This document shows positions 17,901 through 23,900 of a stretch of DNA of 64,000 nucleotides, piece after piece. Below the pieces are notes generated by a model. It was given only the letters and a program-made list of their open reading frames with translations. It did not search any database and was not told the origin of the DNA. Location of the stretch: the NCBI GenBank assembly GCA_002269645.1, contig NIVC01002629.1, positions 1 through 64,000 of the forward strand. Reading direction: 5' to 3'. A program made the translations under genes and the position numbers. Each line of letters begins with the position of its first letter. Position 1 is the first letter of the stretch. Source of the stretch: Macrostomum lignano (lineage: Eukaryota).

Positions 17901-20900
17901 ATTGAGGGGACGCCATTTCAATTGAGGGGACGCCATTTCAATTGAGGGGACGCCATTTCAATTGAGGGGACGCCATTTCAATTGAGAGACGCCATTTCAA
18001 TTGAGAGACGCCATTTCAATTGAGGGGACGCCATTTCAATTGAGGGGACGCCATTTCAATTGAGAGACGCCATTTCAATTGAGGGGACGCCATTTCAATT
18101 GAGAGACGCCATTTCAATTGAGGGGACGCCATTTCAATTGAGGGGACGCCATTTCAATTGAGAGACGCCATTTCAATTGAGGGGACGCCATTTCAATTGA
18201 GGGGACGCCATTTCAATTGAGGGGACGCCATTTCAATTGAGGGGACGCCATTTCAATTGAGAGACGCCATTTCAATTGAGGGGACGCCATTTCAATTGAG
18301 AGACGCCATTTCAATTGAGGGGACGCCATTTCAATTGAGGGGACGCCATTTCAATTGAGGGGACGCCATTTCAATTGAGGGGACGCCATTTCAATTGAGG
18401 GGACGCCATTTCAATTGAGGGGACGCCATTTCAATTGAGGGGACGCCATTTCAATTGAGGGGACGCCATTTCAATTGAGGGGACGCCATTTCAATTGAGG
18501 GGACGCCATTTCAATTGAGGGGACGCCATTTCAATTGAGGGGACGCCATTTCAATTGAGGGGACGCCATTTCAATTGAGGGGACGCCATTTCAATTGAGG
18601 GGACGCCATTTCAATTGAGGGGACGCCATTTCAATTGAGAGACGCCATTTCAATTGAGGGGACGCCATTTCAATTGAGGGGACGCCATTTCAATTGAGGG
18701 GACGCCATTTCAATTGAGAGACGCCATTTCAATTGAGGGGACGCCATTTCAATTGAGGGGACGCCATTTCAATTGAGGGGACGCCATTTCAATTGAGGGG
18801 ACGCCATTTCAATTGAGGGGACGCCATTTCAATTGAGGGGACGCCATTTCAATTGAGGGGACGCCATTTCAATTGAGGGGACGCCATTTCAATTGAGGGG
18901 ACGCCATTTCAATTGAGGGGACGCCATTTCAATTGAGGGGACGCCATTTCAATTGAGGGGACGCCATTTCAATTGAGGGGACGCCATTTCAATTGAGGGG
19001 ACGCCATTTCAATTGAGGGGACGCCATTTCAATTGAGGGGACGCCATTTCAATTGAGGGGACGCCATTTCAATTGAGGGGACGCCATTTCAATTGAGGGG
19101 ACGCCATTTCAATTGAGGGGACGCCATTTCAATTGAGGGGACGCCATTTCAATTGAGGGGACGCCATTTCAATTGAGCTAACCAAAGCTACAGCAAGGGG
19201 GCATCAAAGCTACTGCAAGGGGGCCACCAAAGCTACTGCAAGGGGGCCACCAAAGCTACTGCAAGGGGGCATCAAAGCTACTGCAAGGGGCATCAAAACT
19301 ACTGCAAGGGGGCACCAAAACTACTGCAAGGGGGCACCAAAACTACTGCAAGGGGGCCACCAAAGCTACTGCAAGGTGGGCACCAAAGCTACTGCAAGGG
19401 GGCCACCAAAGCTACTGCAAGGGGCATCAAATCTACTGCAAGGGGGCACCAAAGCTACTGCAAGGGGGCACCAAAGCTACTGCAAGGGGGCCACCAAAGC
19501 TACTGCAAGGGGGCACCAAAGCTACTGCAAGGGGGCCACCAAAGCTACTGCAAGGGGGCACCAAAGCTACTGCAAGGGGGCCACCAAAGCTACTGCAAGG
19601 GGGCACCAAAGCTACTGCAAGGGGCATCAAATCTACTGCAAGGGGGCACCAAAGCTACTGCAAGGGGGCACCAAAGCTACTGCAAGGGGGCCACCAAAGC
19701 TACTGCAAGGGGCATCAAAGCTACTGCAAGGGGGCCACCAAAGCTACTGCAAGGGGGCCACCAAAGCTACTGCAAGGGGCATCAAAGCTACTGCAAGGGG
19801 GCACCAAAGCTACTGCAAGGGGGCATCAAAGCTACTGCAAGGGGGCACCAAAGCTATCTGGCCGCACCCTCTCCTTTTCTATTGGGTAAGTTTTGATGGA
19901 ATTATTAGTGAGAAAATATCAATATGCAAATTTTGTTATGCAACAAAATATGAGCATTTAGCCGCCCCCAATCGAACACTTAAGTCTGCTAGAGTGGTCT
20001 AAGCTAGCAGCTGGCTAGGTTAAAGCAGACAGGTCACAACAGAAGAGGCTATGCAGGGGGGCGGCCTCAGGCGAGCCGAGAGGTGCTGCCTTACTTTGAT
20101 GTAGCCGGTGCTATCGATCAGCAGATTCTCAGGCTTCAGATCCCGATAAATCAGGTCTAAGCTGTGCAGATACTCGAAACCGAGCACGATTTGAGCACCG
20201 TAGAACCTCGAGTGCGGCTCGCTAGCAGCATGTGACAGGGGGGCGACACTTGAGCTCTCAGTAACTCTTTCACATAGACACTACTTACAGTAAGCGCTAT
20301 GGAAAATCTAATGACAAATGACAAAACAAAATCCAAATAGATAAGTAACTGAAGCCTCTCAGCTCGTGAACGGGTATGCAATTTTGTGATAAACAAAGGT
20401 AAATGATTATTAATAAGCAATGCCAATTTGTCAGGGTTGTCCTGTGACGAACAAGCTCTATAATATTATTGAATTAGAAAAACTGCAACCCTGTTAAAAA
20501 TCAAAGCTTCTTATTTAAGACTGGTACTGAGAGTGGAGAGATTGTTATTCTTTAGATTCTGATTAAGCAATCGAAAGCAAATCAGCGATTATGCAGCCGG
20601 TGTGAGATGGCAAAAATTGTGAACTGCTTCCTTCTCGCACTGACAAGGCGGCACCATGGCTGGGGGGGGGGGCGCTTCGGACCGACTCAGACAAGTCAAA
20701 AGTGCAGGTTTAAATTGGGTCACGGACTCCATACGGATGGATTCGAATACAGGAGTCAACTAGGGTCACGGTCAACGAGTGTCAGGGCGACTCAGGTCAT
20801 ATCGGGTCAAGGTCAATGTAAGTTTCAAGATAACAGATCAAACCAGCAGTCCTTGGGGTCATCTCGGGACAAGGTCACCAAAATATCAGGCTAGCAGATT

Positions 20901-23900
20901 AGATCACACTCTTTGGGGTCATCCCGGTCAAGGTCACCAAATTATCAAGATGGCAGATTAGATCACACTCTTTGGGGTCATCTCGGGTCAAGGTCACCAA
21001 AATATCAGGATAGCAGATTAGATCACACTCTTTGGGGTCATCTCGGGTCAAGGTCACCAAAATATCAGGCTAGGAGATTAGATCACACTCTTTGGGGTCA
21101 TCTCGGGTCAAGGTCACCAAAATATCAGGATAGCAGATTAGATCACACTCTTTGGGGTCATCCCGGGTCAAGGCCAATAAATTATCAAGATGGCAGATTA
21201 GATCACACTCTTTGGGGTCATCCCGGGTCAAGGTCACCAAATTATCAAGATGGCAGATTAGATCACACTCTTTGGGGTCATCCCGGGTCAAGGTCACCAA
21301 ATTATCAAGATGGCAGATTAGATCACACTCTTTGGGGTCATCCCGGGTCAAGGCCAATAAATTATCAAGATGGCAGATTAGATCACACTCTTTGGGGTCA
21401 TCCCGGGTCAAGGTCACCAAATTATCAAGATGGCAGATTAGATCACACTCTTTGGGGTCATCCCGGGTCAAGGTCACCAAATTATCAAGATGGCAGATTA
21501 GATCACACTCTTTGGGGTCATCCCGGGTCAAGGCCAATAAATTATCAAGATAGCAGATTAGATCACATTCTTTGGGGTCATCCCGGGTCAAGGCCACCAA
21601 AATATCAGGATAGCAGATTAGATCACACTCTTTGGGGTCATCTCGGGTCAAGGCCACCAAAATATCAGGATAGCAGATTAGATGAATGACTCAAGCCTGT
21701 GCTCAGCGCTCGAAGGGAATATTAAATTGAGAAGCAAAGCCGGTGAGCCAAATGTAATCAGGAGAGGGTGATGAAAATTTTTAAACAAACGCAACCCTCG
21801 ATAAAAATTGGTAATCTTTAGCGGCAAAATTTCTAGGTTACAAAAACGGCTCCGATTCTTGGAAAGAGTAAATTAAAACAAATAAACCTTAAGAAATCCA
21901 TCAGCGTTAATGAGAATATTCTCTGGCTTGAGATCCCTGTACACCAAGTCCAGATGGTGCAGGTACTCAAACGCCAGCACAATTTGGGCCCCGTACAGGC
22001 GGGATACGTCCTCGCTGGAATACGTGAGCGAATAATTAACAGGTTGATTGATTAACCAGCAAAGCTGAATGACATTTCACAAAGAGATTATGGCGTCACT
22101 AACTACTGCACTTGAGAGATAAAAAAACAGGAGAAAAGCAGACTTCTCCTCATTTGCCATTATGGAACAACAAATCTCAAAAGGTTTGACGATTGAGCAG
22201 CCGAAAGAGGAGCATCACAAGCACAGAACATCACAAGCACAGAACACCACAAGCACAGAACATCACAAGCACAGAACATCACAAGCACAGAACATCACAA
22301 GCACAGAACATCACAAGCACAGAACATCACAAGCACAGAACATCACAAGCACAGAACACAACAAGCACAGAACATCACAAGCACAGAACACAACAAGCAC
22401 AGAACACTACAAGCACAAAACATCACAAGCACAGAACATCACAAGCACAGAACACCACAAGCACAGAACACCACAAGCACAGAGCCAATGCCTCAGCCAA
22501 TGCATTGCGTACCTGAATCGTCCAATACGGCGCAGGTGGGAGAACATCTCGCCTCCGTTAACGAATTCCAGCACCATGTAGAGGTTGCTGTTGTCCTGCG
22601 GATCGAGAATGTTTGTTTTTGTCGTGACCCTCGAATGTCAGCTAATATACAGGCAGATATAGAAATCAGAGGCGCCCAGGTGCCTCGCAGCTCACCTTGA
22701 AATGATAGTCGAGCCGCACCAGGAACGGAAAGCTGATCGCCTGCAGGATTCGCTTCTCGTTCAGCGTGTGCTCGATCTGCTTCAGCTTCACGACCTGCGG
22801 CATTCGAGTCATGGATCTCGCTGTTTTTAATATATACTTTACGGTAAGGTGATTGAAATAGCTTTGCTTTGCGAGGCATAAGCATTTTCCCTGTTGACAG
22901 ACAGACAGACAGACAGACAGACAGACAGGCAGGCAGGCAGGCAGGCAGGCAGGCAGGCAGGCAGGCAGGCAGGCAGGCAGGCAGGCAGGCAGGCAGGCAG
23001 GCAGGCAGGCAGGCAGGCAGGCAGGCAGGCAGGCAGGCAGGCAGGCAGGCAGACAGACAGACAGACAGACAGAGAGTTTTATCAGAAATTCCCAACAAAT
23101 AATTAATCCCACAAAAATCCCTGCCGGAAAAGATAGCTAATAAGTTAATCCCCAAGCAGCGCGAGAGAGCTGGGAATAGAATGAATAGTGAAGGCCGCCT
23201 GCATTTTGACATCGCGGCGAGTTGAGAGATCAACGCAGGCCAGGCACGCGCTCAGCCCGACAGAGCAGCGCCCGTGATTGCGGGGCCCTCGGGCCTGCAG
23301 GCTTACTTTATATTTCATTATTATAGATATAATATATGCGAATCTAATTTCCCAGACTCTTTGCTGCCTCATCTTTACTCGGGTTCGTCCTCTTTCTCAT
23401 CCTTCATTTCTTATCCGCTCTCTCAGAGGGAGCGGCATGGGAAGGGAGAGAGAGTGAGTGAGTGAAGGCGCGAGACAATTTAATTATTCTCATTTTTGCA
23501 CTTTCCCTCTCCCGCCTCCCCCAGTGTCCTCGGCGCTCAGTCAGTCAGCCAGTCGATCGGTCAGACCGGTCAGCGGTCGCACTCTCTAGCATGCGGAGCC
23601 GGGAATGAGAGGAGATACAGGCAGGACTTGGGTGTTGGGGAAGAGAGTTCCGTCAGTCAAGGAAGTATGGGAAAGCATAAGGGGAAGCTGCCTCACTGGC
23701 TGGGATTTCAGCTACAGAGGCTTGCGGCTGGGTAAGAAAAGCGGCATCTTGTCGCCGAAAGGGGGAGGCGAGCACAAGAAACAGCCGAGCAGCTTCCCGA
23801 CTGCGGGGGGGGGGAGCTGGAGGTGAGCGGGGAGGAGAGAGAGGGAGAGAGAGGAATCTGCAAGGCGGGCCTCGCAACAACCATTTAGTAACCGGTAAGG

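Follow-up and report, generated by a model that had tools for sequence, protein, structure and literature searches.

The window analysed here is a 64,000-nucleotide (nt) stretch of Macrostomum lignano DNA (contig NIVC01002629.1, assembly GCA_002269645.1). On its minus strand lies a gene of group Mlig032677 for the catalytic subunit of PKA (PKA-C). This gene carries two tandem copies of a catalytic-core exon, 6a and 6b, and we consider it likely that each mRNA receives one of them. The two copies are supported as a tandem-duplicated, frame-incompatible pair such as typically serves in mutually exclusive splicing, and very probably work in this manner. They would provide a clean flatworm case in which exon choice reaches the catalytic core of a kinase and is not confined to its tails, in an animal that is amenable to transgenesis and RNA interference. 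Current understanding is not overturned by this finding; the pair extends a device reportedly described in 1988, and the fresh angle lies in the depth and the pattern of its conservation.

Anatomy of the duplicated exon

The gene model was rebuilt from the raw sequence, with exons located by tblastn using mouse PKA C-alpha. Within the window this query matches both copies (E = 1e-19 and 2e-14), so that their resemblance to the kinase is not due to chance. Exon 6a (22014-21888, minus strand) and exon 6b (20221-20095, minus strand) are each 127 nt long, adjoin within one intron interval and are homologous to each other. Exon 6a, which encodes S139-K181 in PKA C-alpha numbering, is bordered by ttccag/CGAGGA...CTTAAG/gtttat and has an off-consensus donor; exon 6b, bordered by gctag/CGAGCC...ATCAAA/gtaagg, has a consensus donor and is of the bilaterian-canonical sequence type. 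Both have an AG acceptor, a GT donor and no stop codon, are entered in phase 2 and left in phase 0, and share their partners on either side, namely exon 4, which ends ...CGATTCAG at 22513, and exon 7, which starts GTGACGGAC at 17069. The copies agree at 78/127 nt and at 30 of 42 residues (71% in protein), the nucleotide differences being spread over codon positions 1/2/3 as 14/7/28. An assembly artefact is ruled out, since the copies differ at 39% of their bases and recur in five loci. No third, degenerate copy was detected in the window at E<10 by tblastn with mouse PKA C-alpha. The length of 127 nt was found in every other species checked, including Echinococcus with its single copy, and is therefore not an adaptation of the window gene.

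Joining both copies in one transcript gives ...GFLKRAALEV...SGSEA and then a TGA within 6b, and skipping both gives ...GRFR with a stop two codons into exon 7. A preliminary description of this stretch had reported two 127-nt exons of phase 2/0 with intact splice sites and no stops, which is correct to the base; the peptides it quoted for 6a and 6b match the translations exactly, and its four junctions (22513-22014, 22513-20221, 21888-17069 and 20095-17069) are placed correctly as well. It had further proposed that the frame enforces exclusivity. It is true that inclusion of both copies or of neither breaks the frame, but the frame merely renders the wrong products non-productive.

The exon covers the alpha-E helix, the catalytic loop YRDLKPEN and beta7-beta8, and outside it the two predicted proteins are identical. 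In the residue numbering, taken from a gapless alignment to solved PKA C-alpha structures, 6a and 6b differ at 12 of 42 positions (P141D, H142V, F145L, G153A, S159H, I163V, L172I, D175N, S176A, T177D, Y179F and I180L), with the catalytic residues Y164, R165, D166, K168, E170 and N171 the same in both. In the spine model of PKA we take L172 to be a residue of the catalytic spine (C-spine) and I163 to be a neighbouring core residue; the remaining changes fall in the alpha-D/alpha-E linker and in the beta7-beta8 turn. A plausible effect of the switch, judged from these positions, would be a tuning of dynamics, cooperativity or binding to the regulatory (R) subunit and PKI, and the kinetics might be adjusted in the same way, with the function of the enzyme left unchanged.

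The mechanism that we propose has each mature mRNA carrying one copy, either 6a or 6b. Transcripts with both copies or neither would be shifted to early stops and would be non-productive; messages with early stops are expected to be degraded by nonsense-mediated decay, and these would probably be removed by that route. The reading frame would in this way clear mistakes and not make the choice, which would be a regulated competition between 6a with its off-consensus donor and 6b with its consensus donor, presumably under trans-acting factors and possibly dependent on tissue or stage.

Paralogues, constraint and the use of each copy

The same genome holds two older paralogue groups of the gene, B (Mlig002500/Mlig001428, locus L001) and C (Mlig033349/Mlig001504, locus L002), in addition to the window's own group, A. 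In L001 and L002 the order is the same as in the window, 6a and then 6b; all copies are 127 nt long with intact AG and GT sites, and the intron between them measures 317 and 355 nt, compared with 1666 nt in the window. Between the groups the proportion of synonymous differences (pS) is 0.48-0.83, which is near saturation, and that of nonsynonymous differences (pN) is 0.11-0.21 for 6a and 0.02-0.06 for 6b (6b pS 0.6-0.8). Because synonymous sites are near saturation, the low pN reflects constraint. In binomial tests across the three paralogues the nonsynonymous deficit reaches p = 8e-4 to 6e-6 for 6a and p < 1e-8 for 6b, and the 6b exons of A and B alone show 4 nonsynonymous and 23 synonymous differences (p = 5.5e-12). 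The 6a of paralogue C, too, is still under constraint. As judged from these substitution patterns, both exon copies are under purifying selection, tighter on 6b and looser on 6a. An exon free of purifying selection, named at the outset as grounds for giving up the pair, was not encountered; both copies are constrained across the three paralogues.

A side observation concerns the 6a of paralogue C (L002 20239-20365), a mosaic that is 6a-like at both ends (RLYGAQV... and ENILI..DGFLK) and 6b-like over its centre of 17 residues; this centre matches the 6b of the window at 48/51 nt when compared by eye. The pattern suggests an old gene conversion between the copies.

As to which copy is used, the GenBank annotation of M. 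lignano was produced by StringTie and TACO out of RNA-seq data and a de novo transcriptome and not ab initio, and the TACO isoform fraction was set to 0.75, so that isoforms below 75% of the major one were dropped (PMC5730564). In these RNA-derived models 6a is the only form annotated for the window gene (PAA54401.1 and PAA56370.1). Since the identical model, P0396, derives from RNA-seq and the de novo transcriptome, splicing does in fact join exon 6a to exon 4 on one side and exon 7 on the other; because of the isoform fraction of 0.75, 6a is probably also the predominant form in whole-worm RNA. The ranking implied by the preliminary description, with 6b as the normal exon and 6a as the variant, has to be revised, as the transcript-based annotation of this gene uses 6a. 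Paralogue B is annotated with 6a (P0235, P0397) and C with 6b (P0236, P0400), and both exon types are therefore spliced in M. lignano. We infer that the one window gene makes both forms.

Several points weigh against a working pair. No transcript or RNA-derived model joining exons 4, 6b and 7 was found in the window's gene group, and the exact 6b isoform is absent from a collection of 15 billion proteins. The sole 6b model, P0402, is a gene prediction of older date and of the UniProt/WormBase type, and its exon 2/3 junction is odd. GenBank shows a single form for each paralogue group, and a search of intron blocks and inverted repeats yielded no cis element that would explain the choice of exon. 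The single form per group could be explained by the dropping of isoforms below 75% of the major one. It would also follow if the paralogues had divided the two exons among themselves without any alternative splicing, A and B having settled on 6a and C on 6b, with the other copy disused or amounting to noise. Such a partition accords with the one-form RNA-derived models, and also with the protein collection, in which no exact reciprocal isoform was found (A with 6b, B with 6b or C with 6a), a result that is not evidence of absence. We nevertheless regard it as unlikely, because the supposedly unused copies are intact and strongly constrained, as the A-B comparison of 6b and the 6a of C attest, and none of the six exons has lost its splice sites. 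In addition, minor isoforms were filtered out when the annotation was made, and in oysters, a chiton and the nemertean Lineus both forms, or all of them, come from one gene.

A narrower alternative would take the window 6b for a recently silenced relic, a pseudo-exon that has stayed intact through too little time. The missing RNA-derived 6b model in group A is in keeping with this, and a recent loss in a single lineage could not be dated by pairwise tests among old paralogues. Against it, 6b is without stop or indel, retains its AG together with a GTAAG donor that fits the consensus, and appears with the same sequence in the prediction P0402, and the same loss would be needed independently in group B. 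This alternative is very improbable.

The same exon in other animals and the origin of the pair

In a full-length protein search, bivalve gene models from Mytilus coruscus, Pinctada and Mya were found to fuse both copies of this exon in tandem. Short peptide queries centred on 6a returned no 6a-like sequence outside Macrostomum, their hits being limited by length to short fragments. RefSeq isoforms of equal length that differ only in this exon occur in Ostrea edulis (X2/X3), Crassostrea gigas/angulata (X5/X6 and X1/X2), the chiton Liolophura sinensis (X4/X5) and the nemertean Lineus longissimus (X1/X2/X3). At the Ostrea locus two tandem 127-nt copies lie 136 nt apart between the same flanking exons (...RIGRF and VTDFG). 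In Lineus longissimus (OU342995.1, locus L007) there are three tandem 127-nt copies, at 27944-28070, 28551-28677 and 29398-29524, and the isoforms X1, X2 and X3 use one of them each. Two further Lineus models, P0383 and P0393, differ across residues 141-337, which may point to additional alternative exons or to a second gene.

The Ostrea, Crassostrea, Liolophura and Lineus genes resemble that of the window in their tandem 127-nt copies and AG/GT sites. Lineus variant 2 is similar to 6a in sequence and also takes its place, ahead of the canonical copy. On the other hand, Lineus has three copies, molluscs have two in an order of types opposite to that of the window, and the intron between copies measures 136-720 nt in the oyster and Lineus set, in contrast to 1666 nt in the window. 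The second mollusc copy (the VLEYLHHLDIMY type of Ostrea, Mytilus and Liolophura) makes up a separate clade and follows the canonical copy on its downstream side, whereas 6a is of another type and lies upstream. An orthology of 6a with this second mollusc copy was rejected for these reasons, the separate clade having 95% bootstrap support. The preliminary description knew of no such switch in this PKA-C exon; since molluscs and nemerteans have duplicates of the exon and use them as alternatives, the window pair is a new flatworm example of a known device and not a novel switch, and the public annotation of M. lignano already contains it.

The first account of the device is said to be that of Beushausen et al. 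in 1988 (Neuron 1:853), on CAPL-A, a neuronal PKA catalytic subunit of Aplysia californica, with mutually exclusive cassettes A1 and A2 of 42 residues (aa 142-183) that are reportedly combined with alternative N-terminal exons, so that one gene would yield catalytic cores differing in the cassette alone. The A1/A2 cassette is presumably the same exon as 6a/6b, its reported size and position fitting. Cheley and Bayley reportedly found in 1991 only modest differences between the recombinant A1 and A2 enzymes, in kinetics and in R-subunit interaction; a 1992 Aplysia paper deals, by its title, with alternative N-termini, the 1988 isoforms being a different pair. In the open literature no text describing the internal Aplysia cassette was found, nor was any literature on mutually exclusive exons in Macrostomum.

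Mutually exclusive homologous exons within a kinase domain are also known from JNK1/JNK2 (MAPK8/9, exons 6a/6b) and p38-alpha, where they tune the interaction with substrates and partners. The window pair is alike in consisting of homologous, very probably exclusive exons within the kinase domain, but it belongs to another kinase family and to another exon. Within the PKA-C family, kin-1 of C. elegans has isoforms that vary at the N- and C-termini and not in the catalytic core (PMC3771449), and variation in mammalian PRKACA/PRKACB is terminal as well, reviews of PKA-C evolution mentioning N-terminal exons only and no internal exon switch (PMC3625193, PMC5526564). These genes resemble the reading proposed for the window gene in that many isoforms arise from one PKA-C gene by alternative splicing, and differ in that their variation lies at the termini. 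The PKA-C exon switch of molluscs, nemerteans and flatworms is much more widespread than the main reviews of PKA-C isoforms suggest, and their silence may account for its being unknown to the preliminary description. Two repeated blocks of other kinds were seen in passing. A PRKACA model of Branchiostoma lanceolatum (P0242) contains the exon-7 peptide twice, which may be a duplicated activation-loop exon or an artefact of the gene model, and in Ixodes scapularis ISCGN_031297 (P0232) a block of ~130 residues, VVKLKQ-EIILSK, occurs twice in identical form and looks like a duplication in assembly or annotation.

The origin of the pair was addressed by neighbour-joining on the 42-residue peptides with 500 bootstraps; at the DNA level the Neodermata were represented by Echinococcus. 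Exon 6b is placed with the canonical bilaterian exons. The three 6a copies cluster (67%) and are joined at 51% by the exon of cestodes and of one trematode and by Lineus variant 2; the second mollusc copies form the clade of their own described above. Four states, V150, H159, V163 and I172 in C-alpha numbering, are common to 6a, the tapeworm and fluke exon and Lineus variant 2. Along the DNA the copies are ordered as 6a-like, canonical and third type in Lineus and as canonical and second type in molluscs; in Echinococcus the only copy is of the 6a type.

Two histories can be read from this. In one, to which we give nearly even prospects, the 6a/6b duplication is private to the Macrostomum lineage, and the likeness of 6a to the tapeworm, fluke and nemertean variant is a convergence on a few conservative substitutions. 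The peptide offers only 42 residues and the clade in question has 51% support, the four shared states are conservative and some of them also occur in single exons of annelids and bryozoans, and the mosaic 6a of paralogue C indicates that exchange between copies happens. Set against a private duplication are the bootstraps, in which Macrostomum 6a and 6b were grouped together in 0/500 replicates, the position of the 6a-like copy of Lineus upstream of the canonical one, as in Macrostomum, and the 6a type of the single Echinococcus exon. In the other history, which we put forward tentatively as the less probable of the two, 6a and 6b would be survivors of an old spiralian cluster [6a-type][canonical][third type], of which Lineus would have kept all three members, Macrostomum the first two, molluscs the last two and parasitic flatworms, as seen in Echinococcus, the 6a type only, the Macrostomum paralogues having shifted their default choice. 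The old cluster is offered as a hypothesis, given the 42 residues, the conservative nature of the substitutions and the signs of exchange between copies.

If the deep homology were true, the PKA-C core of tapeworms and flukes would correspond to an alternative exon of their free-living relatives. The parasite enzyme, which has been proposed for drug targeting, would in that case have the 'alternative' core as its basis, and V150, H159, V163 and I172 would be consistent core differences that offer a handle for comparing parasite with host enzymes.

Exon choice, gene model and repeats

All three paralogues show the same asymmetry of donors, 6a being off-consensus (gtttat, gtttca, gtaatc) and 6b always gtaag. 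Steric exclusion by a short intron is ruled out, as the 6a-6b intron of 317-1666 nt is far too long. The U2/U12 exclusion described for some mutually exclusive pairs is inapplicable in the window, where all donors are GT/GC of the U2 type; among gtacgc, gtttat, gtaagg and their paralogue counterparts none fits /RTATCC, and incompatibility of this kind is excluded. Weak polypyrimidine tracts at 6b were rejected as well, since the counts do not separate 6a from 6b. Docking and selector RNA pairing of the Dscam type found no support in the form of intronic blocks conserved among the paralogues or of inverted repeats consistent across the three loci. The only 7-mer common to the three paralogues in any proximal intron region is TGTTGTG (20035..20041, minus strand), which lies 53 nt after the 6b donor in the window and 48-78 nt after it across the paralogues. 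In its region 7/500 shuffles reach the same result, which is not significant after correction for six regions, and the heptamer may at best be regarded as a weak candidate for a GU-rich splicing element.

The intron between 6a and 6b contains a 60-bp minisatellite (20795-21683, no strand assigned; 14.8 copies, 92% matches). The array had been pointed out in the preliminary description, which held that it may influence the choice. The array itself is real, but it is one of eight minisatellites across the introns of the gene (periods 29, 23, 20, 22, 60, 16, 4 and 32) and is missing in the older paralogues. It is common only to the recent duplicates L005 and L006, and a role as regulator of exon choice was rejected because it is absent from B and C, whose 6a-6b intron is 317-355 nt long. 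The M. lignano genome consists to 15% of tandem repeats (PMC5730564). Another of the eight, a 16-bp array in the intron between exon 4 and 6a (unit CTGTGCTTGTGATGT, 22213-22483), matches a single copy of CTGTCCTTGTGATGT in paralogue B (L001 ~12539-12553, E = 0.23), whose spacing from the exon 4 donor is almost that of the array in the window. A GU-rich element already present in the intron may have given rise to the array.

All exons of the gene lie on the minus strand. The coding part of exon 1 (28571..28631) reads MNIIRKLGNTQQSKKSDPSD and then base 1 of the codon that follows, with the donor G/gtgagt; it was found by tblastn with the N-terminus of P0396 at 100% identity. Exon 2 (26665..26855) encodes the A-helix, the Gly-rich loop and the beta3 Lys and has the GC donor AAG/gcgagt, and exon 3 (22696..22794) encodes a 33-residue peptide. 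Exon 4 (22513..22595; 83 nt), the common upstream partner of 6a and 6b, ends ...CGATTCAG/gtacgc, and exon 7 (16974..17069), the common downstream partner, encodes a 32-residue peptide with the DFG motif and the activation loop. The C-lobe follows in exon 8 (15679..15951; 273 nt) and the C-tail in exon 9 (14769..14909), which ends in ...FAEF and a TGA stop. The GC donor after exon 2 (26659-26664, minus strand) is also present in paralogue C (L002 15526-15531), paralogue B having gtgagt, and it is at this exon 2/3 junction that the prediction P0402 reads 10 extra residues.

By phmmer the product matches solved PKA C-alpha with E = 1.6e-198 in a single gapless stretch over residues 7-356, and the catalytic motifs and the C-terminal ...FAEF tail are present. 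On this similarity the gene is a PKA catalytic subunit of the C-alpha/C-beta type, an AGC kinase. In protein searches it is matched best by sequences of Macrostomum lignano itself, a free-living flatworm. PAA54401.1/PAA56370.1 (BOX15_Mlig032677g1/g2; P0396) are identical to the 6a isoform of the window from exon 2 (VKAF) to the stop, and the N-terminal exon of P0396 was located in the window. Identity between the window and the two annotated loci, L005 and L006, is 92-97% and extends through introns and repeats; by this identity, therefore, the window is another recent copy, or another assembly, of gene group Mlig032677. Model P0398 (Mlig032677g3) is the window protein with a frameshifted C-tail, probably through a one-base difference early in the last exon, and P0034, which has an exon of the 6b type (…LLLDAVGYIK), seems to be a fourth PKA-C paralogue of M. 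lignano.

Elsewhere in the window, a 13-kb array at 42595-55700 is made up of a 17-bp unit, GATTGTCTGATATCGGT, in ~743 copies with 82% matches, and a long stretch of constant GC and AT skew is due to this array. Other large arrays lie at 30809-32616, 38012-39515, 40022-40850 and 63079-64000.

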